A stretch of 64,000 bases of DNA, taken from Schmidtea polychroa. Lineage: Eukaryota. Under the pieces are notes generated by a model. The model was not told the DNA's origin. It made no database searches and worked only from the letters and a program-made list of their open reading frames with translations. The DNA lies in contig CM097888.1 in assembly GCA_044892525.1 (NCBI GenBank), forward strand, positions 74,586,001 to 74,650,000. The letters run 5' to 3'. A program made the translations under genes and the position numbers. Of this stretch, positions 267 to 57,200 are shown piece by piece (position 1 is the stretch's first letter; each line of letters opens with the position of its first letter).

Positions 267-3200
267 CTAACGTTATTTAATATTTATTCAATGTAATAAT
301 ATGTTTTAAAGGTACCTAGACATTTGGTATAAAATAATTTAGTATAAAAAAAATTTGGTATAAATAAATATATAATTTAAAAGATTTAGACCAAAAAAAA
401 TTTATAATTTAATTCATAAATTTAATTCACATTCGAAATATCTTCTACGGGTTTGAGTATAAATGCGATATTGTTCTTCAAAAGTATCCCTATCATATGA
501 AGATAAACTGCCACCTCCCGGTTTCTTTTGTATTCTTCGTACGCCTTAAAAATGGAATAAATTCTTTGATTTGATATCTTTTTTTGATGGGATGGCGAAT
601 ATTGCGATGTCCACCAAGTAATTGCGCGATTATAACCTCATTATCCATAATATATTCGCCATTACACAGGATTTTCTTACTCTAATTGGTTTTAGTTAAA
701 GTGAACATATGGTCGTTTTTTTTAAAATTATTTTTTATTTGACACATTTTGATATAAAATCTATTTTACTCCAATTTTTTTAAACGAAATTTATTATCTA
801 TGAAAATTGTTTTATACCAAATATTTTTATACCAAATGTGTGTGGACCGTTTTCAAATAGTTTAGAAACGTAGTCAAATATCACAAAATTATATATTAAT
901 ACGACCCCGGCGAGTGCAAATTCGTTATATTGCCACCGACAATTAAAAAAAAAATTTTTCAGACACTGGCCTTGACAGTGCGATAAATCGTCATAATGAG
1001 TGACACATAATGTCCTTGCTCACTTACAAGCATATAAATGTACACAGTAATTCATGAGTGTGAGTGATACAAAATAACGTCACTCTGTGGATCCTAGTAG
1101 ATACAATTTACATACATACAGTTGACCTAGTTTAGCTTTGCATTCGAAAGAAGAGTGACGTCTTAGCTGTGATTAAAAACGCGTGTTAATTATTCTAAAA
1201 AGTTTTTACCAAGCAAGCATAAGGCTTGGACGACACAAATTTTATTTATGGACTGGTTCAAAACTTGTTTCTACCCAGCAATTAAAAAATATTACGAGGA
1301 TATTGGAGTTGAGCCTCGACCTCTTCTGGTGCTGGACAATGCACCAGGACATCCTTTGAAAGTTGAGACGCTCTGTAATAATTTTCCCATTAAAGTGGTA
1401 TTTTTACCTACGAATACCACTTCCTTCATACTTTAAAATTACACGGTGAACCCTTGACTAATGAAAAGCTACAGGAAATGAAGTGTCATACACCCTAGAA
1501 AATGACGTATCCGAACCTATTCCAGTCAGAAATTTGACTGTAAAAACTATGGAAAAGACCCTTCCTCTTCACAATCAATGCATGGAGTTGTTAGAAGAGA
1601 ACGATGAAGATTACGAGCGATTAAATGCTGTTAAACGTGGCTGTAATGCATTGCTTGATGATTATCGGCAAATTTTGAGCAATAAACGTAGATAAGTCAA
1701 ACAAGAAAATCTAGATTCCTTTTTACAACATCGAGAAAAATGAATAAATTATAAATTTATCCACTGTATTTTTTTTTAAATTCTTAATGCTATTTTCAAT
1801 GTTTATTTAATTTTTTATTCTTAATGTTATTTGCCTTATTATTATTCTAATTTTTATTTAATAAATATAAAGTTTTTCGAGTCTTTTTTTCAAAAATTCC
1901 CAGTTGAACGCGATCATGTCCAGAACATGTACCCGCGTTAAACGAGGGTTACCTGTATTACTTATTATGGAAAAATCCTTTATATAATATTTGATAAGTA
2001 ACCAAAAGAAAATACAATTTTTAAAATAAATTTTTATGTAGTTAAAATTTCATAAATGCCTTCATATTTATTTCTAATATTTTTATAGACACCTAAAGAA
2101 CTATATACATATGTTAGGGTAAAAAAGGTTTTAGATGCATAAAAATTACAGCTAAAGAAAAGTTTTTCTCTAAAAAACCAAAAATGAAATTTTGTTTAAA
2201 TATAATAAAACCCGTATTTTTGGTAATTTTGGAAAAATCTATGATTTAGTTGAGTTTCACAATGTGATTTGTTTTGTACTCATGATGAAAGCAGATAAGG
2301 ATGAAATGATTGAACAGCTTCAAGAATCATATGAAAGATATGACCAGTGATGTTATTCAATTTTCTTTGGAACCTGTACTCTTTCCAAATTTTCATCGAT
2401 TTGTAAAATGAAAAATCAGTACACACTTACTAGAACTTATTAAGAACCAGGGCGAGTGTAATTGTGCGTACGATATGACCCATTCTAAGTAAACAAATTT
2501 TCCTTCTATAAAATACTAATGAAATTTTAAAGTAAATCATATTTGATTTATAATTTTTTAAAGTTTCTAATCAAAGGTTTTTTCAATTGTATCTAAAAAG
2601 AAAGGAAAAATATTTGTTATTTGTTATAAATTTAGTGAACATATTCAAAACAGACATCAAAGGGATTATTGCAATTTTTAAATCCCTCTCTCTCTCTATT
2701 GTCCTAACCTATCAAATTTAACTGAATATTTAAAATCTTTACATCTAAAATTAAGATTGTTTTAAATTTTCAAAAAAATAAAATTTGAAGAAAAAAATAA
2801 ATTACTTGTGATTTTTCAAAATTGATAAAAGATTGGGAAAAAGATTCATCTGCTCCATCGGCGAACAGGAGAAGGCTCGAAATTTTCACTGTCATTTCCA
2901 ACAGTTTAATTTCCGAGACTGATAAATTATTCAAATTCGAATTGTGTATGATATTGTCTAGAATTCGGTAGAACACAGCACTACCTACTGCCCAAAGCTG
3001 CTGTGAACAAACTTTTAAATTCTTTTCTTCAATTAGACTTATTTGAGGTTTATTGCATTTATCTATGGACTTATGTTTTTCCAGAAGATTAAACATGCAC
3101 CATATCACGATTTGCAAACTGGAGTTATTTCTCACATTTTCCAACAACCAGAAATAAGTCTGTGATCCATTCTATAAAAAGTAAATGAAAACAATCTAAG

Positions 3201-18200: not shown

Positions 18201-21200
18201 ATTTTGATCTTTTCTCAAATTTTATTGTTGAAAATCAGTAGGTAACGCCAACACTAGAATGGATACGACTGTACTGACTGTAAACGGTAAATGGTACGAA
18301 CTTGTTGACGCGCCAGAGTATGGTGTAAGATAGAGAGTGATAGATGGAAATAAATCTAAAATGTTGGTGTTTTTAATATGCTCAGGGATCGTACTATTCC
18401 TATGAAACTCAAAGGGTTAAGTAACAATTTTTAAACCACAAGTTCAGCAAATTTATCACTTAACAGACTAAAGTAGATGAAAATTTTCATTATTTAATAA
18501 TTTCTTCAGATGATGTCAACTTCTATATTAATAGTCATGATAACCATCCAAATTTCTGTTTTTAATGGTAAAGAAAACTCCGTCGTTCTTTTTTTGTTTT
18601 ATTCTTTTTCACATATGTCTACGGCAATAAACAAAACTCGTGTTTGGACTTGATTTTTAGCTTTAAAGATGGCTACTAAACATGAATAAGGCTGTACCGG
18701 AGGGATAAACATATTTTAAGTTTCATATTAACACAACTTTAAATAAATTACCTTTTATATTTTCAGTTCTTTTTCGGATTTTCTCTACAGGCCCATTTTT
18801 AACTATGGAGGGTTTAGTAACTGAAAAATAAGATGATATTTAAAATTTAATGAAAAATTTGATAAAAATTAATTATTATTTTAATTCATACCATCTATTT
18901 TTAATGTAACATTGTCGCTGGTTTTATTATTTTTTAATATTATTTTATCAATGGTTATCACTAAATTGTATTTCCCACACGCTTTTGGTATCCAGTCAAT
19001 GAAAAAGCAATTATCTTCTTCGTTCCACCGGTATTTAATTCTTTGGGATTTGCATACTGTTTCTTGGAATCCGGCGGCTCGAATTTCTTCAAAACTGTGG
19101 GCTTCATAATTCTATAAATAAAATAAAATGTTATGAAAAATAATAATAATTTTTTGGAGATATTATAAGAGTTGAATTGAAAGGGAAACTCTAAAATATA
19201 AAAAGGGATTGTAAAAATAAAATTAATTGATTATAAAAAAAATTAATTTAGGATATACAGGTTTCTCTCATATAACACGAAATTAAATTTATTTTTATTA
19301 AAATTATTTTTCGGAACGTAACTTATAGTTTTGTTTAGTACAGTTTTACATAGCACTAACTACCGTGTTATAGGAGGAAATTTTACACGCATTTAAATAT
19401 TTTAAAGTTTTATATAGAAATTTTTATAATCATTTGGAAATTATTTTTTTGTGACAAATTCATAATTAGATTATTATTTCCCTATATTATTTATATTATT
19501 TATCTACTCGAGAGACGAAAGCGAACGTTCTAATAATGATGACTGTTAAATATTTATTAATATTTTTTAGTTTCTCCACATTTATTCAATAATTTACAAT
19601 TACATTTATCTTCATTCTTTGAAACTACAGGTCAATATGATACTTTCTATATCTGAAAGAATGAAGATTTTACATATTAATTTATTTGACGTTCTATTTT
19701 TATTAAATAGTTAATTTTTTATTTTTTATAAAAAGCAATAATATCTTTACACTTAATATCCTTTTAAAAATAAATATATTAATAAACTAAGCCCTCCCAT
19801 GATAGTCGTATAAGACTCATAAAATTATAAATATAGTTTTTTACATGGTTTACTAACAAAGATTTTAAAAAACTTAATTATCAATAAATTTACTTTTTAA
19901 ATAAGTTAACATTGATTTTCCGCGTGACTCACATACACACAGTGCATTGTCATAAGTAAATGGACAGTCGACAAAATTTATAATTGTTAACACTCATCAA
20001 AGAAACCGAGTCTAACGGTTTTTAATATAAAATAACGCAGTAGAATAGACACAGGTATAACATCGTCTTTTGCTATTTGGGCAGCTGTTGTACAATGATC
20101 AGACTCAACACTTCGTCTCACAGACCGAAGAATATGCTCAGATAGTCTTGGCCGTCCATTACAAAGATTGGTACTGGATTTTCCTGAATTGCAAAATTGA
20201 CTCACAACATTGTTCACTGTCGACAGAGGCACCTGCAAAGCAGCCGCAGCGTTTCTTTGTGATCTTCCTGACTTGCATTGTTCAATATTTATACCTTTTT
20301 AAAAATCTGACAGTTCTGATAACCAATGGGAAGATATTAACTAATCCTAGTTAGCTTTCGCACAGCGACTAACGATAGGGCTATGTAAATTTTGTATTCT
20401 AACTTTATTGTAGTTCTTGCAATGTGATATCACTAATAATTTTAAGCATCTTTTCTATTTTAAGTCCATTTACTTATATATATATATATTTACCTTATAT
20501 ATTTTAATTTCAAAATTATTTTAAAACTCTTTAACTTCTTATTTAGTGAAGTTAAAACAGAATATTTCAATTGACTCAGGTAATTAATTTTTACTAAATG
20601 CAATAAAGCAATATTTGCTGTTTACAAATATAAAATGTAATATTTTCTTGGTTTAAAAAATAATAAAACTTGTTTAAAATTGTATTTAAATTTGTATTTA
20701 CATTGTTGTTAAAATTTATTTATAAGATTTGATATTTAATGACAATCTCTTACTTTCATCATTGTTATACTTTGATATATATCTTTTCCAATTATCGTTC
20801 TCTCAAAGGGTACGGTGGTATTTGGGACTGGATGCCCTCCAAATAATTTTTCATTTATCTATATTAAATTAAATTCGAAAATAGTAGCATATTTTTCATT
20901 CTTTTTTTCAAGATTTAACTTACATTTATAAAAGGATTATTTCCTTTGTGATTATAATTGAAAATAACTTCTATATTGCTCATTTGGGATGTCACTTGAT
21001 TTTCATATTGGTCAAGCAATTCCAGTTGAAGATTAATTTCTTTATTCAGTTCCGCTGTAATCTGATTTCCGACAATATTTGTTTCTGATGAATTTCTAAA
21101 AATGTAAATATTTGGATATTTTATATTTTTAATAAATCAGTAATTTAGAATAAAACTTGATTCGAATATCAATCATGAAAGTTCTCAGAGATTTGTCAAA

Positions 21201-24200
21201 ATTTATTACAAATTAGATCAGTACAAATGGAAACTGTTGGATTTTATTATTCATTTTAAATTGAAATTGTAAGGAGTTAATTAATTAAATAAATATTTTT
21301 TTAAATTTTTTTAAAATATTTTATTATAATCATTTATACTTATACTCAATGTAATTTACAAATAAATAAACGTGAACATTTTATTGACGAAATTAGTAAT
21401 AATTATTTAGAAAATCGTTAATTGATTTTGTTTAAAAGAAGTGAAGAAAAGATTTTTTGATTTCTTAAAAATAAAGTTTCATTTAATTGTTTTATTTTCA
21501 TATATTCAAAACGATTACAGAAATCGTTACTGTTTTCGTTACGCTAAAAATAATTAATTAATTCTTTAACTGTGTGAAACGTAATTATACGTTTAGCTTG
21601 ATTTTCACAAAATATGTTTGATGATTACACCAACATCAATCTTATTTGAGGAATGGTTTAGAAAATAAAAAGAAAAATATATAGTTTTCAACATTTTTTA
21701 ACGAAATTCCATAAATATTCTATCATTTCATCAAAAATAAATCCCCATTAAACATTAAATTAAAAAAAATCAATTAATTAAATCGAGTTAATTAAAACAA
21801 AGAAGAATGATCAATAAGTTGTGAAGTGAAAAGATGAAATTGAATAACTGTTTATGAAATAAATAAATGAAAAATAATGTTTACGTAATGGGGGCTCTTA
21901 AGAACTAAATGCAAAAAAAATTATTAAAAAATATTGTTATGATTAAAAACCATTGCAATTATATATATAAAAACTTGTCCTTTGACAACGATAATGAGTT
22001 AACATGTCAAATACAACTATTTTATTATAAGAACTTGAGAAACAAAATGGCAACTAATTATAGTGCATTATCTATTAAACTAGTCTATATAAAACATGTA
22101 CTTTCCAAAAGTTCCCGTCTGTTTGAAAAAAAATAATTTCAAAGGAAAAATGACGAAAGGAAATAAATTCACTAAGTAGTTCAAATAAACATTATTCTCA
22201 TATAATAGTATCAATATCTTTACAGATTCATAGTCAATTTTTTTAATAAATACAATGTCAATTAAAATGAAATCAGAGGTGANNNNNNNNNNNNNNNNNN
22301 NNNNNNNNNNNNNNNNNNNNNNNNNNNNNNNNNNNNNNNNNNNNNNNNNNNNNNNNNNNNNNNNNNNNNNNNNNNNNNNNNNNNNNNNNNNNNNNNNNNN
22401 NNNNNNNNNNNNNNNNTTTCAAAGTTAAATGGAAAATGCTATGTAGATTCCATTAAATATTATAAGAATATGGGAAATAAATACTGGATAGGATATCAGA
22501 AGGAAAACCCATATGAAATTACTTTGCATCTGTTATTTTGAAACAATAAGCAATTATTTACATGTATGAAATAAAGCAAACATAATATACTTTGAAACTA
22601 CATATTTTGACTCAATTACATATTTTTTTAAATTTCCTCATAAATTATACAATAATAATTTCTGTAATAATTTAAAATTACGCAATTCCAAAATATATAA
22701 AAGAAATCTTAAATTCTAATGTTATATCAATTAAATGCAAAATTATATAAATGCCAGTTCTAAAAGAATTCTTAATGAATTGAATCGTATCCATAAAACT
22801 AAGCCAGAAGGAATTTCAATTCGATTAAAATCACAAAACGATACTTCTAAACTCATTGGAACTTTCACTGGATTTCCAGATTCTCCATATCAACAGGGAT
22901 CTTATGAAGTAGACTTCAACATTTCCAAAGAATATCCATTAAAACCTCCACAAGCTTATTTTATAACAAAGGTTTGGCATCCGAATATCAGTTCCGTAAC
23001 TGGATGTATTTGTCTTGACATACTCAATGATAAATGGGCATTACATCATACTTTATTGTCGGTTACGGTTGGAATATCTTCATTACTCATTCAAGCAGAA
23101 CCGAATGATCCTCAAGATGCAATCGTTGCTAGACAATATTTAAACGACAAAGATTTATTTGATAAAACTGCAGCATTTTGGAATCATTTCTATGCCGGAG
23201 GTCCGAGAAAAGAAGAATTCGATGAATTCGAATCAAAAATAGCTCAGTTGCATGACATGGGATACCCGACAGACGTGTCAATCCACTCATTGTCAATGTG
23301 GAATTGGGATTTAGATGAAGCAAAAAGGGACTTATCGAACAACTGAGACATTATAATTTTATATGATTTTCATTAAAACGAAAACATTGTTTTCATTTTA
23401 TTTTCATCTTTTGTAATGAAATATATTTAATTAGCAAATGTTGATTTCTTTGATTTTTGGTGTACTTTGAGTTGACAAATTAAATAAAATAGAAATTCAG
23501 AATTATATTTTTGGGATTAATTAGCCGTAATAACGTTGTTGAGGTTCCAGCGGCTACTACAAGTTTAATTGTACAGAAAATCAAAATTTAGTATTTGAGT
23601 AAACAATAAATATATTTTGGTGGATAATTTTCAATTAGTAAAAATTTCAAAAATATGTTTTCAAAAAAATGTTTTTCTATTATTCTACAATGAAATTAAT
23701 GTATTACTTTAATTCATCCAAATATTTAGCGGGCATCGAAGTAGGGACTAATTTAAGTCGACAATTACTGACAATAACCACGGAGCACGATTGAAGCCAC
23801 TTAGATAATTGAACTGCCGGAGAAGAACATAAGGTTTCAGGATAATAATTTGATCCTTCTACAAACCTTTTGACAAATGTCGTCTATAATTATATTTTTA
23901 TTCGTTAAATATAATGTAACAAAAATTAACATAAAACTATTATAATAAAAATCTGTTTTTAAATATAAAAATACTTCGAAAAATTTCAACATACTTTAGT
24001 TTCAGAANNNNNNNNNNNNNNNNNNNNNNNNNNNNNNNNNNNNNNNNNNNNNNNNNNNNNNNNNNNNNNNNNNNNNNNNNNNNNNNNNNNNNNNNNNNNN
24101 NNNNNNNNNNNNNNNNNNNNNNNNNNNNNNNNNNNNNNNNNNNNNNNNNNNNNNNNNNNNNNNNNNNNNNNNNNNNNNNNNNNNNNNNNNNNNNNNNNNN

Positions 24201-27200
24201 NNNNNNNNNNNNNNNNNNNNNNNNNNNNNNNNNNNNNNNNNNNNNNNNNNNNNNNNNNNNNNNNNNNNNNNNNNNNNNNNNNNNNNNNNNNNNNNNNNNN
24301 NNNNNNNNNNNNNNNNNNNNNNNNNNNNNNNNNNNNNNNNNNNNNNNNCAAATGAAAAAAGGAGAAAATTAGATCATACTTGTATTGAATTTATGTACTC
24401 CAATTGAGATTTATTTAAGCAATCTGTTAATGTGGGTAATTTGGATAATGAGAGGCCTTGATCTAAAATGCTTTTATAGGCTTCACATTTCTAAAGATTA
24501 ATAACATTAAAAAGTTTAATCAAAATTTTTATTACTTGAAGAATATTGGTTTCGTGTAATAATTTGATGACTTTTGATTTCTTTCGAAATTCCAACAAAC
24601 TAGTGGCGCACCTAGATGCCAAATATGTCAAAGCATTTTCTAGCAGCTCAATGGACTAAATTAAAATTTAAAATTTTATTTGTTAATTTGATAAGTGTAT
24701 TTTTTAAAGATGTGTATAAATAAAACAAAATAAACATTTTAAAAATAACACAGGTTTTTAACTAATTTTACTATTTGTATTATTATGATGAAAATGATAA
24801 TAATCTATGAAGGATGAAACATGATTATGAACTGCATCATCTATTTGTTAAAATCTGTCATTTATACATTATTGAGCTCTTATACAAGGAAAACTATACT
24901 GCTAACAGTTGATTGTAAGTATTTTGCCCATTAGTAAGTCTTGCTAATGTATAAATTTCTGTAATTTTCATGTGAAAAAATATCGACTTTTCATATAGAG
25001 ACATAAAAATTAATCTTTCATTGTATTTTATGAGAATTCGAGATAATATGTCTTGGGAAAGTGAAAACTGTTGCTTTCACGAAGATTTTCCCAGTAATTA
25101 ATAAAATGCCAAGCAAACTGCATTTGTCTATCAAAACTATGTTTAATCCAAATATCCTAAGATCAATCGTTTAGGTATCACAACTTTAAAATATTGTATA
25201 TATTCAAAAAGATACATTTTTTGGATCAATTAACAGTCTTCATAAATTAGGAAAAATCTAGAAGCAAATTTCAATCGGATTAGGAAAATTCATCATAAGA
25301 AAATGAAAAAAATTATAAATATTTAATTTAATTTAAAATAATTTACTGAATTTTCTCCGAACCCTAAGAAAAAATTAACTATCATTATGTTGTACAAAGA
25401 ATTTCGAGTAAGCATACAAGAGTGACGTTTATTATATTGTTCACAATGTATTTTTAGATGCATGAAATATCAAATGGATTCAACGAATATATGCTTTAGA
25501 ATTTGCTTTAGAAATCTCCATATTTGCAGTACTGGAGCATATTCATAGAATTATGACACATTCCCATTTGAAGCATTGTTCAAAAAGATATTTATTCTAC
25601 AAAAACACAATTTATCCTCGACTTAAGCATCAATTGGTTTAAAGTTAACCACAATACCTCTATTCACCTCAGAAAAGCTATGCCTCAAGTGAGACATAAA
25701 CTAATAATTCATATGTAGTACTTCAGTATTCGTTTAGTGAATTTATTGGTGATAGAAGGAACATTTTAAATACATTAAAGAAACAGCAAAATTAGAAAGA
25801 GGGTAAAATTGAGCAGCTCATTGACAGCAAACTTCTACAGAGCAGGGGAAAATCCCATGATTGCCGAACATATAGTAGGTAATCACTTGAACCGGGACAT
25901 TATCAAATTCCTAAGAGGTTTAATTATAAAATCTTACACTGAGTAAAACGTCATATTCAACTGTAATTAATTGAAAGATTTTTGTAATCAAACCTATAAC
26001 AAAAAATCTTTAAAATGTATATATTTTATCGTTAGGTATATGATGTCGATATTATTCAATACCTTAATATTTCATGAAATACCAGCTAAATATTATAGAA
26101 TATGATAAAATTTAATTTATATCAGTATTTCTCAATCGCCGGTTCGCGAAATACCTTAAAAATATAAGTCAGGAGAAAGGGAAACTGCATGTGTGCGTCA
26201 TTCTTGTGTGTGATACTTATAAATAAATAATAAATAAATAGTAAATATCAATGTAGTTTGCAGTTTTTTTACAGCAAAGTATATTTCTAAATAAAAAATA
26301 ATATCACCAGTCTGCGTAAAAAAGAAAATATCTTGCGGTCCGTGGAAAATGTTATAGTTAAACAAAAATTAAACATAATAAAAACTTGCAATATCAAAAT
26401 TGAAACTTATTTAATATTTAATTATTTCATATAATAACAACATTGTGACCATAAAATACATATGTTAGATTTTTGATAAATTAAATGCATTGAAACAAAA
26501 ATTAAATTGAAATAATATTTACTGCATCAATTTTACTGCAATGTCCAACAATGGAACACTTGAATCCGTATGTCGACTCTAAAGATTCCTCATATAAAGA
26601 AGCAGTGTGGAATTCGAAAACGATTTCATTTCCTGAAATTATTTTAATATTGTTTTATATTCTACTACCAGAAAATTACCTTGAATTATGACGGCTTTTT
26701 TTGGCCAATCAGAAATTATATTACTCAAATTTTTGAATATTGATTTCCATTTATTTTCAGATTGATTTCCATTAGATTTATTTGTACGAGCTTTAACCGT
26801 TAGAAAGTCTTCCGGTTGAGCTGTCACGCAATGACCATCGAATGTGACACTGATAGCATCAACCGAATCGGGAAATTTTATCTTTTAAAATGAGTAAAAT
26901 AAATCAGTTTCACTAGTTCATTATGAACAAATTTACTGTGTTATGCAAGAGTTTAGCCTGTTCATATGGATGATTGCTTTCGATTATAGTGAAAAAGTCA
27001 TTTTCTGGGCTTATTAATTTGTCAGTAGTTTTCCAATTTTCTTGAATTACGATTAAAGTTTCTCTTACGAATGTTATGGATAAGCATGTTATCTGAAAAT
27101 AGTTGAAAATAAATAAATTGTTATTGTCTTTCTCAGTTGTAAAATTTTCCAAAAACTTTAATATAGTTCTAATGTCTTTTAAGACAAAAACATTGTCTAC

Positions 27201-39200: not shown

Positions 39201-42200
39201 CAAAAATAAATTTAGTGAATTTTGATTGGTTATTATTTTGTTTGTACAAGATTGCGGTCGTTTGTATATTTTAGTATAGTTTTCTATTCGTGTTTTTTGA
39301 AAAATTTGGTAAGAAGATTTTTTTATGAAGCATTTTAAAATTTTAAACTAATTAAAATTAAATTAATGTCTTTTTATTATTTTGTTTAAATTTCAGCCAT
39401 TTAAATTTATTATTATAATGACATCAGAAAACATCTAAAAACGAAAATACAGACAAGAAAATAGAACTTTTCAAGAAGAATGGACAGAAAAGTTTTTTTT
39501 ATTGACAATAATGGTAAATCGTTGTGTCTTATTTGTAAAGGTACAATTTCCAACTACAAAGTAACCAATTTACGTCGACACTATGAAGTAAGTCATCCAC
39601 ACTTATCAATTCAATATCCACTCAATTCAAACTTGCGGACAGAAAAACTTAAGTCATTGCAATCAGGGCTTCAAGCCCAACAAGGACTATTATCTACTTT
39701 TAGTCGAGAAGATGACAGTGCCAACGAAGCTAGTTTTTTGATAGCTTGGAATATAGCTCGTGCTAAACGTCCATATGGAGAAGGTGAATTTATTAAGAGA
39801 AACTTGGAAGAAGTGATTAAAGTTTTGGATCCGGACAACTCAAAACTACATAAATTGATCTCACGTATTCCTATTTCACGTCGTACAACTGAGCGTCGAA
39901 TTGGCCAAATTAGCGAAAATGTTGAAAATAATTTGATGTGTGATTTAAAAAATTGTACAGCATTCAGTTTAGCTCTCGACGAGTCTACTGACATTCAGGA
40001 TGTTCCACAATTAGCCGTTTTTGTCCGCTTTGTATCTTCTGACGTAAAAGTGAAGGAAGAAATGTTAGACCTAGTAGCTCTTCTCGAAACAACTCGCGGT
40101 ATCGATGTCAAAACTGCGCTTGATGTAGTTATGGACAGGTTCGAATTGACTCGTGACAAACTTGTAAGTGTTGCGACAGACGGAGCGCCTGCAATGATGG
40201 GGAAAAATCAAGGTCTCATTGGTCTTTTAAACAGAGATCCTAATATTCCTCACTTTTTATCTCTTCACTGCATAATTCATCACGAGCATCTCATAGCGAA
40301 GTACTTTAAATACGAAAATGTGTGGAAGATTGTTTTGAAGATTGTGAATTTAATTAGAACAAATGCCAAAACACATCGTCAATTTAAAAACTTTTTGGAA
40401 GAATTAAGATTAAATGAGGAAACAGATGATTTGCCTAATGATGTCTCCTTATGGTGTATTGTTAGATGGCTGTCAACTTACAATGTTTTGAACCGTTTTG
40501 TGGAACTCCTAAATCCTATCATAATATTTACCAAAGAAAACGGAATAGCATACCCAGAATTAGAAAATGAAACTTGGCTTTCTGACTTAATGTTCCTTAC
40601 AGACATTATGGAACATTTGCAAACATTAAATTTGGCTTTACAAGGAAAAGAAAAGATAATTATTGATTTGTCACAAACGTTATTTAGTTTTGAAGCTAAA
40701 CTTCGGCTTTTTGTGAACGATCTTAGGTCGAAAATATTTAATCATTTTCCACGAATAAAAGCTAATATATTGTTGTGAATCTTTGTACTCCACAATGAAG
40801 TTCGTAAAGTCGAAATATCGTTCACAGTTGACCAATCAGCATCTTACAGAATTGCTGCGAACAGCTTTAACAAAGTATACACCAAATTTCAAAGATTTGA
40901 CCAAAAGTCTTCGTTAATTCAAGAAATTTTATTACTTTTTATTAATGGATTTTTATGTTTGTTACTTAATGTTTGAAATAATTATTTTGTTTTTTTTTAA
41001 TAGCGTTTAAGTCTCTTTAATCAAATTAATGAAATAAAAAAAAATATGTACTTTACTATGGTGGCTCTGTAAAAAATAAATTTTCGGAAAATGGCTCTTA
41101 TTGAACCCATGCGTGCCCACCCTTGACCTATAATATCAAAAATATATCAAAGAAACTATAATTAATAATCAAAATTTAATGAAATTTTATTTGATAAAAA
41201 CAATTTATATTTTAAATAATATATTTCAACGAATTTGTTAACTTACTAAAAAATTAATATTTATATTATTAATAATAGTCGTAATATTATTAATAATAAG
41301 AAATATCCCATAAATTTTACCTTTTTAAATTTTTTGTGTCGAAATACATTTTTAAATTTCAATTTCGTTTAAAACAAAAAAGAGTCTAAAAGTAATTAAA
41401 ATAAATTTCAAAATAAGACTTTTTTTGAATTGATTTCTATTGAACATTTAATATAATTTTATTTAATATCGCATAAATTACCGCAAGGTTTTCATATTTT
41501 TATCCAAAATTATGTATTAGAAAATTGCGAAATACATAAAGAAAAGTGGGATTATTGTAGGATTAATGTTGGATGATGAAGTTAAGACCATCACCGCATT
41601 TGTCCTAAATAAATATTACAAGACAGGGCAAAAAGCTACAACGAAGAGCGGCAATAATCCCAAAAAGATCAAATTAAATTCAACAAGATCAAACCAACCC
41701 AACACTTTCTGCGAAAGACATTTTTATTTCAACCTTTGACAATAATTTTGATGTCATATTCTAGACAATAATTATCTTATTTGTGAATGGTGTTTACTCT
41801 CAATAATTATTATCTTAATGTCTTTATTATTTATTTAAATAATATTTTAAATCTATTATTGATATGTCAACCTTATTTTATGTAAATAACATTTTCATTT
41901 TGTGTTCACTTGTATTTTAAGAGTACATATAAATACAATGTCAATTGAAAAGAAATCAGAGGTGAAAAATGAAAAAAAACATAAATAAAAATATAAAAGT
42001 AATGTAAATAATAATTTTAATTGATTATTATAGTGTGAGAACATAAAAGAAAAAATAATAAATGACATAATAATAATAACATCTGTNNNNNNNNNNNNNN
42101 NNNNNNNNNNNNNNNNNNNNNNNNNNNNNNNNNNNNNNNNNNNNNNNNNNNNNNNNNNNNNNNNNNNNNNNNNNNNNNNNNNNNNNNNNNNNNNNNNNNN

Positions 42201-45200: not shown

Positions 45201-48200
45201 ATATGTTTATACAAGACAATATTTAAACTAAAATTTTTATTAATACTATTAATATTATTTTAACGCAAATAAACAAATGATTAACTGAATAAAAAGAATT
45301 AATTATTGTTAAAATTTAGAACATATTGAATAAATAGACATTTTTTGTTCACAAAATATGACTTATTATTGTTAGTTTATAAGGCTGGTAACTATTTTTA
45401 TATTAGATAATTTAAAATACTAATAAAAGAAAATTTAACCAAATAATAACTTACCAAAAATCAGTTGCCCCGCTTGGATAAACAAAAATTCATATGCTAA
45501 AATGACCCGCTTATAAAAGTTATACTGTACTGTAATTTTCCTGATTTTATAGAAGAAATAACATAAAATAATAAGATAGTAACATTGCTAGATTTCAATA
45601 GGATAAAAACTGTAATCTGGCTCAGTGCTTTCAACAAATAACAAATGTATTTTCATGACAAATGCACAAGTTCTGAAAATGTTGACTAGTAATTTAAACA
45701 GAACTTCAATTGATAGAATTTCTGATTACTTTTACTAAGGGGAAACTTTCCTTTATAACAGATGATATTTTAACACAATTCATATGAAAAAATAAGAAGA
45801 TGAGAAAAATTAATACATTTTCTGCAGCAAATCTCTTATCATTTACTCGTTTAACATTTAATTTATGTTATTACCAAGAATCCATCATTTTAAATATGTT
45901 AGTATTTGTAATAATATCAGTATTTATGTTCTTAAAAACCTTAACTAATAATGAACAAAACAACTCAAAACTTGCCAATACATAAGACAGTAAAATGAAA
46001 ATGATGATTGCGAAGGTAAATAAAAGGAAAGGTATAATATAAAGTCAACTATATCACAAGTACAACTGCTACAGGTATAAATTTTATATTTCTTAATAGC
46101 ATCATATCTAATGTTTTATTGTCAAATATTGGGTATATTTTCCCATGCTTTCGACCCTTAATCAAATTACTAAAATGCAGCTCCAACAAAAATTAAATAA
46201 AAACTTTATCTCGAAATGTTCGTAATCAAATTACAGAGTGCTATAAATTTGGAAAAATAAAAATGAATATTTATTTTCTAAATTTTGTTTCATAATGATT
46301 TTGTTTATTGTCATTTATTTATTTTTAAATGATAATATAAATTTCAAAATACAAAATCATTAAACAATAAAACAATTATACAAAACCAGTAAACACGAAA
46401 TGTAAGAAAAATATTACAAAATTACACACATACTTTTTATTTCTTAAAAAATTGCAACACCAAATGACATAAAAAGATTAGTTTTATTGTATAAATAAAG
46501 TGAGGAATACTAATTTTAGCAATTGGTACCAACCAAAATATAAATGGGAATAATTACTGTCAAAATATGAACACGCCAAAACGTTCACTTTTCGCGGTTT
46601 TTTAAATTTTAAATTTCAAAACCGTGTATAAAAAGTACCGCGGAAATTGAGGGGTAGGTGTGTATTTTTAAAATAATTGCAACAAAATTTGACATACAGG
46701 CAACCAACGTTCCCTCTAAGCTGCGCGCGTGCGTGCGCTCGCAGCACCTCCAACTCCCCAGCGCAGTATACACCAAACCCCACTGAGATACGTTCTCTAT
46801 AGTGGTGGTCTGCGTGTAGAGTGATTGCTCACTCACCAATTTACTAATGAATTTTATACTGAATTATGTACTGATGTTGATTAAATTGTTGTTGAGCAAA
46901 GTTGTCATAATTTGTTTTACATCATGAAATTTATTTTAGCCATTTTAGAAATGGTTTTCAGGTAAGATATTAAATTTAAAGTAAATTTTAAGACTTGAAT
47001 TTTGATCCATATGGATATGAGATCATTATTCAAGTTCTTAAACATTACTTTTAATCAACAATATAATTATAAATTATTTTTAATTAATTTTCAGGCTTTT
47101 TTTTAGGAATTTTATGTCATTTATGTCATTTATTATGGAATTATTTCGAAAAAACGTGAGTCCGATATGTTTTTAATTATAATTAATTAAATAAATAAAT
47201 AAATCCCCAAAAATTTGTATTTTTTTAAAACATTTTGGGAAAAATCGCCTAGTATGAATAAAGTAATTTTTTAAATTTTTGTAATTTTCTTTTCTGAGTT
47301 CAATATCAAGGGCTTCTTTCAGGAAATCATATCTTGATTGAAACGACATTGATCCAAATCCTTCTGCTCTTGATATTCTTTTCCTAATATTAAATTTAAT
47401 CTTACTAAATATGCTTTCAATTGGATTGACGAATGGGCTGTATGGCGGTAAATGCTCAATAATATTATTTGGCGATAATGCTCCTCCATGAATTGAGGCA
47501 TTATCATGAATGAATCGATATTCCGTTTCATTCAATTTCGATGTTATCTCCCAAATAAAAGTTTGATAGGTATCCTTTTTATAGGATCCTATAATTAATT
47601 TGTGGTGAATTGGCCCTTTGACGCCTATTGCCAGAGCCAAGGACATATTTCGTCCTCTGTTTGCTGGTTCGATTTTGTACAACCTTTCACCTTTTTTGTT
47701 CCTTCCCCGTTTCTGGCTTGTCCAGCTATTAAATCCACATTCATCGATATATATCAATTTTTTATCTCTCCATCCTTCTTCCAGGAATCGAGTTACAAAC
47801 TGTAATCTCATTTCCATTACTCGATCTGAATTACGTTGTTATCAGATGTTTCTTCAAGAAACGAGAAATCGTCATTTTTGATACGTGGCAGTTTATGGAA
47901 ATGAGGTAAATTCTCATTTCTTCAATTGAAGCGTATATGTTTCCTTCGACAAAGTCCAACAATTTGTATCCTTCTTCTTCTGATATTTTTTCTTTGCTGC
48001 CACCTATCTTGCCCTTTGACCAATGGCCAAATTTTTTATATTTGTAAACAATTGATTTTATTGAGCTTTTCGATATCCCCAATAATTTCCCGAAGTGTAA
48101 ATAATCTTCGCCATTTTCCATGGCATTTATTATTCGGACTTTGTCAATTTCCGAAATACTAAGAAAATATTATATAATTTAAAATTATAAATAAAATTTA

Positions 48201-51200: not shown

Positions 51201-54200
51201 GTCATCATCAGGTAGGCTATAATAACTATAAAAATTATAGATTTTTAAAAAGATTTATTGATTATATTAATTATATCAATTTTTTAATAAAAATATTTTA
51301 TTCTTTAAAAATTATAAAAATTATAATTCAAATAATAAATCATTTTTTTAAATTTTAGCAATCAAATATAAAATTTTAAAATATTGAAATTTAATAATTT
51401 AATAATTATTTAATTTAACAACAACAATATACAAAAAACTATTTAAAAACATTTAAAAAACAAGTATTCACTGCATTTTGCACGTTGATTTTCGAACCCA
51501 ATGACTTTACCAATAACACTTCACAAATTACACGTTCCCAAGAATTATTATTGAAATTTTTAAATAAAATTTTAAAATCAGACATATTTATTTATCTCTT
51601 ACAGCCTTTATTGTGTTCACTAATTACATCACCCATTAATCACCCATTACATGTAAATTGATAATCATGATAGAACACTATCCAACAGGAGTTTTCGACT
51701 TATTAATAAACATATTACGTACTTTACACAAATTCGACTCAATCTTAAAATTTAAATTTCCTAACGGCTTGCTTATCTTTCTTTTATAATCTTTAAAACC
51801 TTCTTTAAAATACCAACACAAATTTAGGCTCATATAAATAATTTAATAATTGTAATTTTAAAAAACCTTTTAAAAAATATTTTTAAAATACATTTTTAAT
51901 TTAAAAACATTTATATTTAAAAAAAATTAATAAGTTATTATTATATAAATTTACATCATTGAACCTTTTAGTTTTTTCAGCATTAATCAATTTTCATTTT
52001 TTTAATTTCTTTTGTCTTTCTTTTCGTCAAATTATATAGACTGCAAGAAATAAAGATGAATGAAGTCGAAAAAATAAATCAATATAATTTTCAATGTAAT
52101 TATGATGTTATATTTGAAAAATGTATATAAATTTAAACATTACTTATTTTCCATATTTTGAACTTCAACTTTATCAGTTTCGGTCAAAAGTAAAAGCGAG
52201 GAAAATTGACTATCATAACTGAAAAGGTTTGTGTTCAATAAGTCATCAGTATCAGAATCATGTCCAGTTTCTTCGTAAATTTTTATACTCATTGTATTTT
52301 CACCAGGACCTGTATATAGTCCAATACCGTGGATGTAAATAGTTTCAGAAACTGAAAACTTTATTGAATCGTGAGCATTTGGAGAATATAACCAGTTGCT
52401 ATTTTCTTCTAAATGGATAAAATAAAGAAATTTTTATTTCATATAATAAGTAATTTGAATCAAAAAAAATATATTAATTTATTAAAAACCAGTATGCGGT
52501 AGAGTCAAAAAGAGAAATAAATATCACGCAATTTTGAAAAATATATTTTTTTCAATTTCATCTATTTAACCGATTTAAAGACGCCTATCTTAAAATGAAA
52601 AATATGATGGATTTCTTTCATCCGACAAGACTGTCTATATTATTGAGAGATTCTGTACTTTTTCGTCGTCAAATTTATGGGGGCCAGTCATGATGCGAAG
52701 CGTAAATCACCTGAATAAGTATTTACATTCACACATTCGAACATTATACTACCAAATTCATCAATAGTGATACTAAATCTCGTTTGATTTACTTTGTTTA
52801 AATAAAGCGGTTTTTATTTCCTTTTTCAAAGTATTTTCAACCGTTGTTTCAATTTTGGGAATGTGGTCTATTTCCACTTTACAAATCCACAAATAGCTTC
52901 AGACAACGTAGATGATTGCAATACTTTACTTACTCACAGAACATCAGGAAAGTCTAGTATTAACAAAATAAAACTTTAAAAGTACTAGTTATTTAAAAAC
53001 TCGTGTTTTAGGATTCTAAAATGCAAGAAATTGATTAATAATAATTATAATAAATAATTAGATTTCAGAGGTATGGGAGATGTCATTTTAGAGTCACCTA
53101 TACATTAAATAGAAAAGTATCCTTAATTTCTATTTGTCTTCCTATTGTCTTGGTATTTCGGATACAACAAAATGGTATTTTTATTAAATATTTACTNNNN
53201 NNNNNNNNNNNNNNNNNNNNNNNNNNNNNNNNNNNNNNNNNNNNNNNNNNNNNNNNNNNNNNNNNNNNNNNNNNNNNNNNNNNNNNNNNNNNNNNNNNNN
53301 NNNNNNNNNNNNNNNNNNNNNNNNNNNNNNNNNNNNNNNNNNNNNNNNNNNNNNNNNNNNNNNNTGTGAATCTTTTGATAGTAAATATTTCTTTATTTGA
53401 TTCTACAGTTTTAATTTCAATATTGTTCTGAGGATCTGTATATTTTTTCAGCAAAAGTTTTTCAGCACTGACTATAAAAATCATATAAGGTCAAACATCA
53501 AAAGGTTAGAATTACCCAAAACGTTTAAAGCGATTCTGTACCGCTGACTGGAGAAATTTATATCATCTGGTAAATCAATCAGTTGATCAAATTTATCATG
53601 AAAATTATCATTTTGGAAAATGTTGCTTTTTGAGTATTTAACTGTGAATTTCTTTGATCCATGTCCACTGTCAATACTCCACAATACCGAATACCTTGGA
53701 TCAAAATATGAGTTCATTAATGAACTAAAATTTCCTTCTTCATAGTCTGGCATTATTTTAATAGCTCCGGAAGATATATTAATTAGCAATCCTCTTTGTT
53801 CATCCGACGTCAATAAAATGTTGTTGTCTTTTGCTAGAAATTTAAACTGATCTTGATGGCAGGATTTTCGCTTTGTTGACAACGTTAACGGTTTCCTTTT
53901 CATATAGAAAATGTTTTGCTTGAGAATACAAAATATGATTTGTTTTTTATAAATATTTGTGCTTAAATTGAAAAAGATCGGCTGAAGGTTATCAGTTAAG
54001 TCATTTGGATTTGAGATTAAGTCCACAATTTGCGGGCTTATTATTTTATTGCCGAATATGAACACCTTTCCATTTTGACTTAAAATTCCAGTACTAAAAG
54101 AACCCGTAGTAATTCTAACAGATTTACATTGAATTGGGACGACCTTTGGCAGTTCTCTGATAAATTGTTAATTATTAATAAGTAATAAATAATAAAATAT

Positions 54201-57200
54201 TTGATTTGCTTTAAATAGAATGTTAAATAAATTTGCAAAAACTATAAAATTTAAAAATAATATTGTTATTAACCTTTTAAACGTCGCAAATTATTTCTAC
54301 GGCTGTGTACTGCAGACTAAGAAATTTAAAATTTTAGAAACTAATTTTTTAATAAATAAATTTCATTTTTAAACACTGTTTATTAAATTTAATAATTTTT
54401 ACATTCTTAGATGTAATTTTACATTCACATCATTTTGCACATTTGTTTTCCATGTATCACTTCAAATACATCAATACAAACACATTATTTTATGCATACA
54501 CAGTACAGCCTAATTCCTCATTGCAGTACCGGCCTTAGATAATTTAGTGCTACATAAAAAGTGCTATATATTTTTTGTCTTATATAAAAAGTGATATTAG
54601 TAGGACGAAGAATAACAAATAATTTTAAATTTTAATTTTTCATAATTTTGCCGCCCATTAAAATAGGCAGCCGCCTATGTCGCTTATACAAAAGCCGGCA
54701 CTGCCTCATTGTGTTCGCTAATATTAATCAATCTCTTAAGTTGACCGTGATCAAGAACGTTATACGGATATGGCGAGTAGTAATTTCTAAGTAAGGTATT
54801 GCAGCCAAAATTTGTATATTGATAACCAAGATCCAAGTACGATTAAAAGAGGATTTAAAATTCATTATTTAATTCACTTTGGGATTATTTCGTCACAATA
54901 TTTTAAGAAATTAAAATTTTATAATATTTTGGTTTTTGAAACACGTCATGAATAATAAATATATATTCAATATATAATTAAGATATTTTTATAAAAATAG
55001 TTTTTGAAAGAGCCTGCACTGAAAGTTTGTGTTAAATAAATAAATCTATAGTCTAGAAGTAAATGATGATAAAAAAACTGAAAATAAAAAGAAATCCATA
55101 GAGAAAGGAATAAAGAATTGTACTTATTATATAACTAAATAATGAAAAATAATATTTCTAAAATTGTGAAATCGTTTTCTTACTTGATTGATAAATATCC
55201 GCGACCCAACTGATTGAATTTATTATTACCAAATGAATAAACGTCGCCATTTACTGTCAAAATAACAGTGTGATAATGTCCACATGATATTTGCTGAATT
55301 CGTAGGAAATTAGAACGGTTTCTAATTCCGGAAGAGGCATTTGTATCAGAATATATGAGTAACTTTTGAGGCTTTATTGTCGGAACTTGATGTTTTGATC
55401 TAAAATTGAAAATAATATTTATATACATCACATAATAATGATTGTTAAAGTTTCTTCATTGGACAGTGATTTACAGATAAAATAATCTCTTCATTTACGC
55501 AATAAAATTAGTTTTTTTCTTTTGTGGGTCGAAACGTTTTAACTAAAACAATTGCTTTTAATATACATATTTATAAGAAGTTACTGATAAAAAAATGTAA
55601 ACTTTTTGATACAACTATCATTTATTTTCATAATAAAAAAGTAATTAATGCATATAATGTTATTGTTACTTATCCAGACTTACTTTCGATAAAATAATTT
55701 TTTGTCGTTATGCCACTATATTTAAATTATATTATTTTAAGTAACATTGTAATTATAAATTATTATGATGTTCACAAAATTATTATAGAAACGACCTTAA
55801 CCTACACAGATTGCATTGATAATTTTATGATCATTGGTCTTGATTTTTATTTAANNNNNNNNNNNNNNNNNNNNNNNNNNNNNNNNNNNNNNNNNNNNNN
55901 NNNNNNNNNNNNNNNNNNNNNNNNNNNNNNNNNNNNNNNNNNNNNNNNNNNNNNNNNNNNNNNNNNNNNNNNNNNNNNNNNNNNNNNNNNNNNNNNNNNN
56001 NNNNNNNNNNNNNNNNNNNNNNNNNNNNNNNNNNNNNNNNNNNNNNNNNNNNNNNNNNNNNNNNNNNNNNNNNNNNNNNNNNNNNNNNNNNNAGCCTTTT
56101 GCTGCAAATAATGTATTTAATGAAAAAATTTTCGACTATAAGATATTGTTATTATTATTAATATTATTTTTTTTATTATTATTGATTGATTAAGTGATTA
56201 ATTAATTCATTGATTGACATGATTTCCAGACATCTGCTGGTTTGACGTATGTACTTTTTATGGTAAAAATATCTCAAAGGAAAAATATATACAAATTATT
56301 CAGCATCATTTCACGAGCTAGATGATAAAATTTAAGTAAAAATGCCCGGAATTCTTGTCAGTTAGCTATAAAATCAGTATTTGTATTTTTCCTTGACAAA
56401 TTTACAAATATAAGAAACTATGAAATAATGAAACAACATTTATGGTTTGTTACCTTGTTTGAGAACAACTGTCGATATTGTTATTATCAATTTCTTGCAT
56501 AATTTCGTTATATTTCCCATCATTATCCCCACTGACACATCCACATTGATAATAGTTATTAACACCGAATGTTATTAAATATCCATTTCTTGATAAGCAG
56601 GCTCCATGGGATTTTCCGAGAGATATCTAAAATATTAAATTAAATAAGTTCAATTCTCTCAAGCATGACGTAAAAGAATTCCCAGTGTTGATTTTAAACT
56701 CTTGCTTTATCATCATTATTAATAAACACTATACAGCTTTTTAAATATTTTTTTTTAATATTTCTTTTAAAAATACAAGCCTTCAAAGCATCCTTGTTAA
56801 CAAAAAAGGTAACCCCTTGAACAATGTTATTATAGTTCTTGAAATTTAACTATGATGTTTACTATCGTCTGTATATTAATTAATACTAATGTGTAAAGGA
56901 AAGGTTTGTTAGAACCTAACAGAGTCTCCTGTAAAAATCTGTGTCGGGACTGTTAGGGTGTGTGTATGTAATGCTTATTACAATACCAATAAGAATAAAA
57001 TCAAAATATAAATATCAAAACGACTAACGAACTATAAACATAAAATTGTAATTTTATTAATGAACATAAGGTACTTTAAATATACCAAGGAGATTGACTT
57101 CGAATGCCAATTAGTATAATTCTAATTTTCTTTTATATGGCAATCTCTTTGTACGGTTATCTTTCCAATTTTCTGTTCGGATAATAATTTACTCTGGTAC

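Follow-up and report, generated by a model that had tools for sequence, protein, structure and literature searches.

Background

Compact genes lying on the opposite strand within an intron of a much larger gene are familiar from EVI2A, EVI2B and OMG, which occupy an intron of NF1, and lineage-specific expansions of intronless (retro)genes for ubiquitin-conjugating enzymes (E2s) are familiar from the testis-biased UBE2D-like retrogenes of mammals. Canonical E2s make their main contact with RING and HECT ubiquitin ligases (E3s) through a phenylalanine in loop 4 (YPFNPP), which is F62 in UbcH5 and F63 in UbcH7. UBE2K (also E2-25K or HIP2; Ubc1 in yeast) is a class II E2 with a C-terminal UBA domain. 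A review describes it as an extender of K48 chains and names UBE2D1, UBE2D3 and UBE2E1 as the E2s used with the giant ligase MYCBP2 (PMC6769291). Here we analyse a 64,000-nucleotide stretch of the Schmidtea polychroa genome (assembly GCA_044892525.1, contig CM097888.1, positions 74,586,001 to 74,650,000; hereafter the window, with positions counted from its first letter), in which an intronless UBE2K-like E2 gene sits antisense within a single intron of MYCBP2. The original prediction, made from the sequence alone, had read this arrangement as a retrocopied or relocated E2 that might form a co-regulated E2-in-E3 unit with its host. We consider it probable that the nested E2 is a dispersed member of a lineage-specific family of intronless UBE2K-like genes, which landed in the MYCBP2 intron incidentally and later underwent gene conversion.

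An intact UBE2K-like E2 gene lies within an intron of MYCBP2

The E2 gene and the host exons around it are as follows.

22735 to 23346 (stop included), plus strand: UBE2K-like E2 open reading frame (ORF) of 203 residues, with UBC core and UBA-like tail (ORF, Pfam, structure match, alignment)
21096 to 23707, minus strand: MYCBP2 intron holding the E2, 2612 bp (GT..AG joint of an RNA contig, reading frame)
23708 to 23883, minus strand: upstream MYCBP2 exon, 176 nucleotides, ending after codon base 2 (frame, RNA contig)
20924 to 21095, minus strand: downstream MYCBP2 exon, 172 nucleotides, beginning with codon base 3 (frame, RNA contig)
20754 to 20858, minus strand: next MYCBP2 exon, past a 65-nucleotide intron (RNA contig)
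18892 to 19111, minus strand: further MYCBP2 exon (same RNA contig)

The E2 ORF runs uninterrupted from the ATG at 22735 to the TGA at 23346. Its UBC core matches Pfam UQ_con (E=5e-36), and among all solved structures the top matches are chains of human UBE2K/E2-25K (1yla/3k9o; E=1e-48), to which it aligns collinearly over query residues 9-199, the UBA region included. An open frame of 203 codons with such a match goes far past what chance would produce in DNA of about 27% G+C. In the alignment, the HPN motif (H82-P83-N84) and the catalytic Cys93 (in GCICLDIL) are invariant with respect to canonical UBE2K. The UBC core, HPN motif, catalytic cysteine and C-terminal UBA expected of a UBE2K/Ubc1-type enzyme are all found. 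The UBA domain itself is present yet diverged, its Pfam match (E=0.058, 13.7 bits) falling short of the 22.4-bit threshold.

Compared with UBE2K, the window E2 shares a full-length collinear match, the HPN motif, the cysteine in GxICLDIL, an AEPxDPQDA segment and a UBA-like tail with an MG(Y/F) motif. It differs in a leucine at loop 4, the sub-threshold UBA, the intronless coding sequence (CDS), its multi-copy state and the existence of a better ortholog candidate elsewhere in the genome. Identity to canonical animal UBE2K is only 43-47%, whereas the canonical set is highly conserved among the animals aligned. The gene is not a one-to-one ortholog of animal UBE2K, as it is 43% identical to the annelid protein and belongs to a 21-copy paralogous expansion. 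An intact, intronless, UBE2K-like E2, as originally described, is therefore what the ORF, the UQ_con match and the UBE2K structures confirm.

The host exons 23883-23708 and 21095-20924 have AG and GT borders and an open joined frame, and the proposed phase was correct, with the first exon ending on codon base 2 and the second supplying base 3. A 7151-nucleotide contig from sequencing run X1 aligns to the window in four blocks (18892-19111, 20754-20858, 20924-21095 and 23708-23883), and every joint has CT..AC borders, corresponding to GT..AG on the minus strand. One of these joints (21095 to 23708, with a side of 172) skips exactly the 2612 bases of 21096-23707. X1 had been labelled RNA only as a guess, and the spliced contig and the near-zero depth over introns show that it does contain RNA. 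As the contig splices straight across 21096-23707, the E2 ORF lies antisense inside a single intron and wholly within one intron of its host transcript, which bears out the predicted nesting in one intron of about 2.6 kb. This RNA splice joint is stronger evidence for nesting than residue-level collinearity with human MYCBP2, on which the prediction had partly relied. Very short MYCBP2 introns of 65 nucleotides (20859-20923) and 71 nucleotides (18821-18891) stand beside introns of 1.6-2.6 kb, and the spliced RNA contig confirms both.

The identification of the host was likewise upheld. Within the window, RCC1 repeats (55183-55455) and a PHR domain (52143-52433) are encoded on the minus strand, the PHR exon matching both Pfam PHR (3e-9) and the MYCBP2 PHR structure 3gbw (1e-7). 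The 200 kb below the window were read and yielded, on the same contig (C4) and the same strand as the window exons, a RING exon (C4:74566681-74567007, minus; 8e-20 to the human MYCBP2 structure 5o6c) and an exon for the tandem-cysteine (TC) domain (C4:74564184-74564525, minus; 1e-30 to 5o6c), 19-22 kb below the window start. RCC1, PHR, RING and TC domains occur in order on one strand, which identifies the host as a true RING-Cys-relay ligase gene of the MYCBP2/PHR (Highwire, RPM-1) type. The gene is more than 85 kb long and extends to about 22 kb below the window start. A search with the DOC domain (PF03256) returned only ANAPC10-type genes on C3 and was set aside; the 3′ end was located through the RING and TC exons instead. 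Pfam returned nothing for several host exons, filamin-like and B-box-like ones included.

An assembly gap interrupts the intron upstream of the E2.

22283 to 22416, no strand: assembly gap in the intron, bridged by no listed contig (sequence, contigs)
22210 to 22282, no strand: edge of a high-copy dispersed repeat running into the gap (read depth, genome copies)

The gap is 319 bp upstream of the ATG and 210 bp upstream of the point where similarity to any paralogue begins, and no reading frame crosses it. The 73-base repeat segment at its left edge gave 824 first-look candidates, with copies of 90-96% identity on all chromosomes, and has a read depth 60-130 times that of neighbouring sequence; this high-copy repeat is the likely cause of the gap. 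Nesting is independent of the gap, because the uninterrupted piece 22417-24007 carries both the E2 ORF and exon 23708-23883, and the RNA contig fixes exon order and orientation. In the DNA-like runs X2 and X3, contig 22417-22655 runs from unique intron into the copied unit described below, and contigs 23342-23522 and 23499-23842 tie its copy-specific 3′ flank to the host exon. A joint from 22282 to 23410 in X2 and X3 was rejected as repeat noise, its side being only 20 and its start falling in the high-copy repeat. Elsewhere, several copies of the repeat are paired with an inverted copy no more than about 100 bp away and so look like a miniature inverted-repeat transposable element (MITE), and short contigs of the repeat occur in the RNA-like run too. 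Rfam gave no match at E<=0.1 over 20500-24007.

As a nested gene the E2 is ordinary, small antisense genes being common in the introns of giant genes. Like EVI2A, EVI2B and OMG in NF1, it is compact and poor in introns, runs opposite to a very large host gene and fits wholly into one of that gene's introns. It differs from them in having many near-identical siblings outside the host, and the nested copy here is known from sequence alone.

The nested E2 belongs to a family of intronless genes

Searching all six frames of the complete 781-Mb assembly with the window E2 ORF returned 21 uninterrupted, essentially full-length UBE2K-like ORFs. The nearest relatives form a cluster on C4 (C4:74361669-74500825; eight intact and two broken copies), 108-247 kb from the window E2 and outside MYCBP2. 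Three of its intact members, termed type A, share 97% amino-acid identity with the window E2 (C4:74412523, 74428078 and 74500217), and five, termed type B, share 87-88% (C4:74361669, 74392801, 74406487, 74422040 and 74437309). No C4 sibling lies above 74.501 Mb, which puts them 63 kb or more past the MYCBP2 3′ end (RING/TC at 74.5642-74.5670 Mb), so that only the window copy is nested in MYCBP2. A further 12 intact intronless copies, with 44-51% identity, occur in small clusters on C2 and C3. In part of the C4 cluster, units of about 15.5 kb with one type-B and one type-A gene each are repeated in tandem at 99.7% identity. The cluster is both tandem and inverted and contains an inverted 4-kb segment, and fragments of retroelement Gag-like ORFs adjoin the type-B copies on the opposite strand.

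The original prediction had also raised the matter of a second, intron-containing UBE2K. With annelid UBE2K (P0069) as query, the intronless copies scored 43-45% identity, compared with 58-64% for split pieces separated by stops, which were found at C3:127310735-127311246 and also at C50:299627-300180 and C51:296676-297229. The C50 and C51 contigs are small and look like alternative haplotypes. From these identities, C3:127310735-127311246 is probably the canonical, intron-containing UBE2K ortholog that had been sought.

Outside this genome, the nearest database protein is P0001 at 82% identity, followed by a few at 53-63% and then by ordinary UBE2K orthologs at 43-47%. Two of those at 53-63% are intronless ORFs (60-63%) on two contigs of about 1 kb from one metagenome assembly. 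Because intronless relatives exist outside this genome, the intronless subfamily is older than this species, and its sequences place it as a diverged offshoot of conserved UBE2K. The exact window-E2 protein had no match in public assemblies, a result that has no bearing on expression. A literature search found no description of a UBE2K expansion in planarians or of nested E2 retrogenes, and the family is apparently an undescribed, modest lineage-specific expansion.

The mammalian UBE2D-like retrogenes offer a parallel to the family as a whole. In both cases intronless copies of an intron-containing housekeeping E2 evolve faster than their parent (dN/dS about 0.4 here, the ratio of nonsynonymous to synonymous substitution rates) and are partly in tandem; the planarian family differs in scale, with 21 intact ORFs, and in its UBE2K parentage. 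We consider it mildly worth recording that about 20 intronless, fast-evolving UBE2K-like E2 genes under selection exist beside an apparent conserved intron-containing UBE2K.

The family departs from canonical UBE2K at the loop-4 phenylalanine. This residue is kept in all canonical UBE2K sequences aligned, and the window E2 lacks it: the window copy has Leu69 at this position, the cluster copies all have Ser, and the nearest relatives have Asn, His or Ile. Most family members read have thus given up the canonical E3-docking phenylalanine. The nested copy is the least changed at loop 4 among the near relatives on C4, yet the phenylalanine is not restored. It alone carries Leu69 and Ala102 at two canonical E3-contact positions, where the cluster siblings have Ser and Thr. 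The expansion could have produced E3-independent or re-targeted builders of K48 chains, perhaps tissue-specific ones.

The copied unit is small and mosaic in identity

The window is homologous to type A only over 22626-23515, a sharply bounded stretch of about 890 bp, and to type B only over 22633-23352. The unit consists of a 106-bp 5′ flank, the 612-bp CDS and a 3′ flank of about 170 bp.

22629 to 22734, plus strand: 5′ flank of the duplicated unit, matching the sibling sequence at C4:74412417-74412522 in 106/106 positions
23347 to 23515, plus strand: 3′ flank of the duplicated unit, about 71% identical to siblings (120 matches, 37 mismatches and 12 gap positions)

The 5′ flank has a TATA-like box, TATATAAAAG, at 22694-22703, 41 nucleotides before the ATG, which is kept in the type-B copies (88%), and the flank may be either a compact promoter or a 5′ untranslated region. 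At the other end, an AATAAA lies at 23483-23488, and the unit ends about 30 nucleotides beyond it. An intronless CDS in an mRNA-sized unit that ends at a polyadenylation site is what a processed retrocopy would present. The original reading of a retrocopied or relocated E2 holds to the extent that this unit of about 890 bp is common to its relatives; the E2 is not the singular gene it was taken for, being one of 21 such ORFs, with eight near relatives clustered outside MYCBP2.

Identity to the type-A sibling changes abruptly along the unit, from the fully matching 5′ flank through 601/612 positions (98%) in the CDS to the far lower value in the 3′ flank. The synonymous divergence (dS) of the CDS is 0.034 beside a mismatch of about 24% in the adjoining 3′ flank, and purifying selection alone can therefore be ruled out as the cause of the mosaic. 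The pattern points to ectopic gene conversion of the 5′ flank and CDS with the cluster; an unsampled parent with another 3′ end is an alternative source.

Selection and expression

By the Nei-Gojobori method, dN/dS between types A and B is 0.36-0.41, below 1 (p=0.005), and between the window copy and type A it is 0.45, with seven nonsynonymous to four synonymous differences, which is not different from 1 (p=0.18). These estimates indicate moderate purifying selection on the family (dN/dS about 0.4) and give no evidence that the nested copy evolves at a different rate. If type B serves as outgroup, the window copy has nearly all of the derived states; if P0001 serves, L69, Q73 and A102 among its seven private residues look ancestral. 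Polarity is unreliable in the face of gene conversion.

In X1, depth was 56 over the host exons and zero over 22454-23497 at a likeness of at least 97%, a threshold that would have caught type-A transcripts too. X1 is one small RNA-like run kept as contigs, which shows presence and not absence, and the negative is accordingly weak. The suggested co-regulation of E2 and host finds no sign here, with zero depth over the E2 in the very run that carries the host transcript. The window E2 nevertheless looks coding-competent: its active site is intact, its 5′ flank is that of the conserved siblings and its family is constrained.

Origin of the nested copy

In the explanation that we favour as probable, an mRNA-sized unit of about 890 bp would have been copied from the tandem E2 cluster 108-247 kb away, or would share a common ancestor with it. 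The copy would have landed antisense in an intron of MYCBP2, which at more than 85 kb may simply have been the largest nearby target, and ectopic gene conversion would then have kept its 5′ flank and CDS nearly identical to the cluster while the 3′ flank drifted. On this account the nesting would be incidental, with no functional E2-E3 pairing. The ORF, its nesting, the existence of the family, the extent of the unit and its mosaic identity are shown directly; how the copying took place, the conversion and the lack of coupling are inferred. Several observations weigh against it or weaken parts of it. There is no A-run after 23515 and no convincing target-site duplication at the AT-rich edges of the unit, as a retrocopy would be expected to show, and the TATA-like box conserved before the ATG suggests a DNA-level copy that brought its own promoter; the size and shape of a small mRNA fit retroposition without demonstrating it, and the copying may have occurred either way. 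Gene conversion over 108-196 kb is inferred solely from the mosaic identity, the polarity of the seven private amino-acid differences depends on the outgroup, and the negative for E2 expression comes from a single contig-only run. If the favoured account is right, the mosaic nested copy illustrates neatly, on a small scale, how ectopic conversion can keep a dispersed duplicate matched to its cluster.

The most serious competitor, which we rate as possible but clearly the less likely, is a silent copy heading for decay, in which the nested E2 is untranscribed and its ORF is open only through recent conversion from the cluster. Zero depth over the ORF in a run with the host transcript at depth 56 would fit such a copy, as would seven nonsynonymous to 3-4 synonymous changes on the window lineage, not distinguishable from neutrality, beside a sibling lineage without nonsynonymous change; two cluster copies, moreover, are already broken. 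However, in DNA of about 27% G+C a frame of 203 codons would be most unlikely to stay open unless it were under selection or had been copied very recently. The conserved siblings share the 5′ flank, TATA-like box included, at 100% identity, and at three of the private positions the window copy agrees with the canonical or outgroup sequence. Contigs of one run, for their part, cannot show the absence of a transcript. Misassembly is far less credible still. The 1.6-kb piece 22417-24007 is short and flanked by two gaps (22283-22416 and 24008-24348), no listed contig spans the left one and the CDS is repeated elsewhere, so the piece might be misplaced and the E2 not in the intron at all; but exon 23708-23883 lies on this very piece, placed and oriented as the spliced RNA contig demands, and DNA-like contigs overlap from the copy-specific 3′ flank into that exon, which makes an artefact highly improbable.

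We likewise give very little credence to a functional E2-in-E3 unit, in which the nested E2 would be co-regulated with MYCBP2, would interfere with it in antisense or would serve as its dedicated E2. The physical nesting is real, and Leu69 and Ala102, hydrophobic or canonical residues at E3-contact positions in the window copy only, are the sole hint of E2-E3 coupling that we see in the sequence. On the other hand, one copy of 21 is nested and its nearest siblings lie outside the gene, no E2 signal appears where the host is expressed, and the canonical phenylalanine is not restored. The many siblings of the nested E2 elsewhere take away the chief argument for an E2-in-E3 module. The predicted E2 transcript would stop about 190 bp before the host exon, and the two are therefore not expected to overlap in exons. 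The review cited above pairs MYCBP2 with UBE2D and UBE2E enzymes. The 18 publications mentioning both MYCBP2 and UBE2K do not link the pair, and neither name occurs in the title or abstract of the ten listed. We accordingly find it hard to believe in a functional nested E2 whose location carries meaning, whether through antisense tuning of MYCBP2 or as the dedicated E2 of a RING-Cys-relay ligase, and the E2-in-E3 unit of the original prediction remains pure speculation.

Other features of the window

Remnants of mobile elements were noted at several places in the window. A 437-residue frame with a Spin-doc-type zinc finger and DUF4371 (39465-40775, plus strand) lies in another MYCBP2 intron and is probably a domesticated or decaying hAT-like transposase. 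Transposase remnants also occur in MYCBP2 introns, one of the Tc1/mariner type (DDE_3, 4e-17; 47176-48169, minus strand), split over two frames, and one a pogo-type DDE_1 fragment (3e-11; 1173-1692, plus strand). The segment 29770-31418 (plus strand) is richer in G+C (41% at 30-31 kb) and has overlapping long frames, the first without a Pfam match, that resemble retroelement gag and protease.

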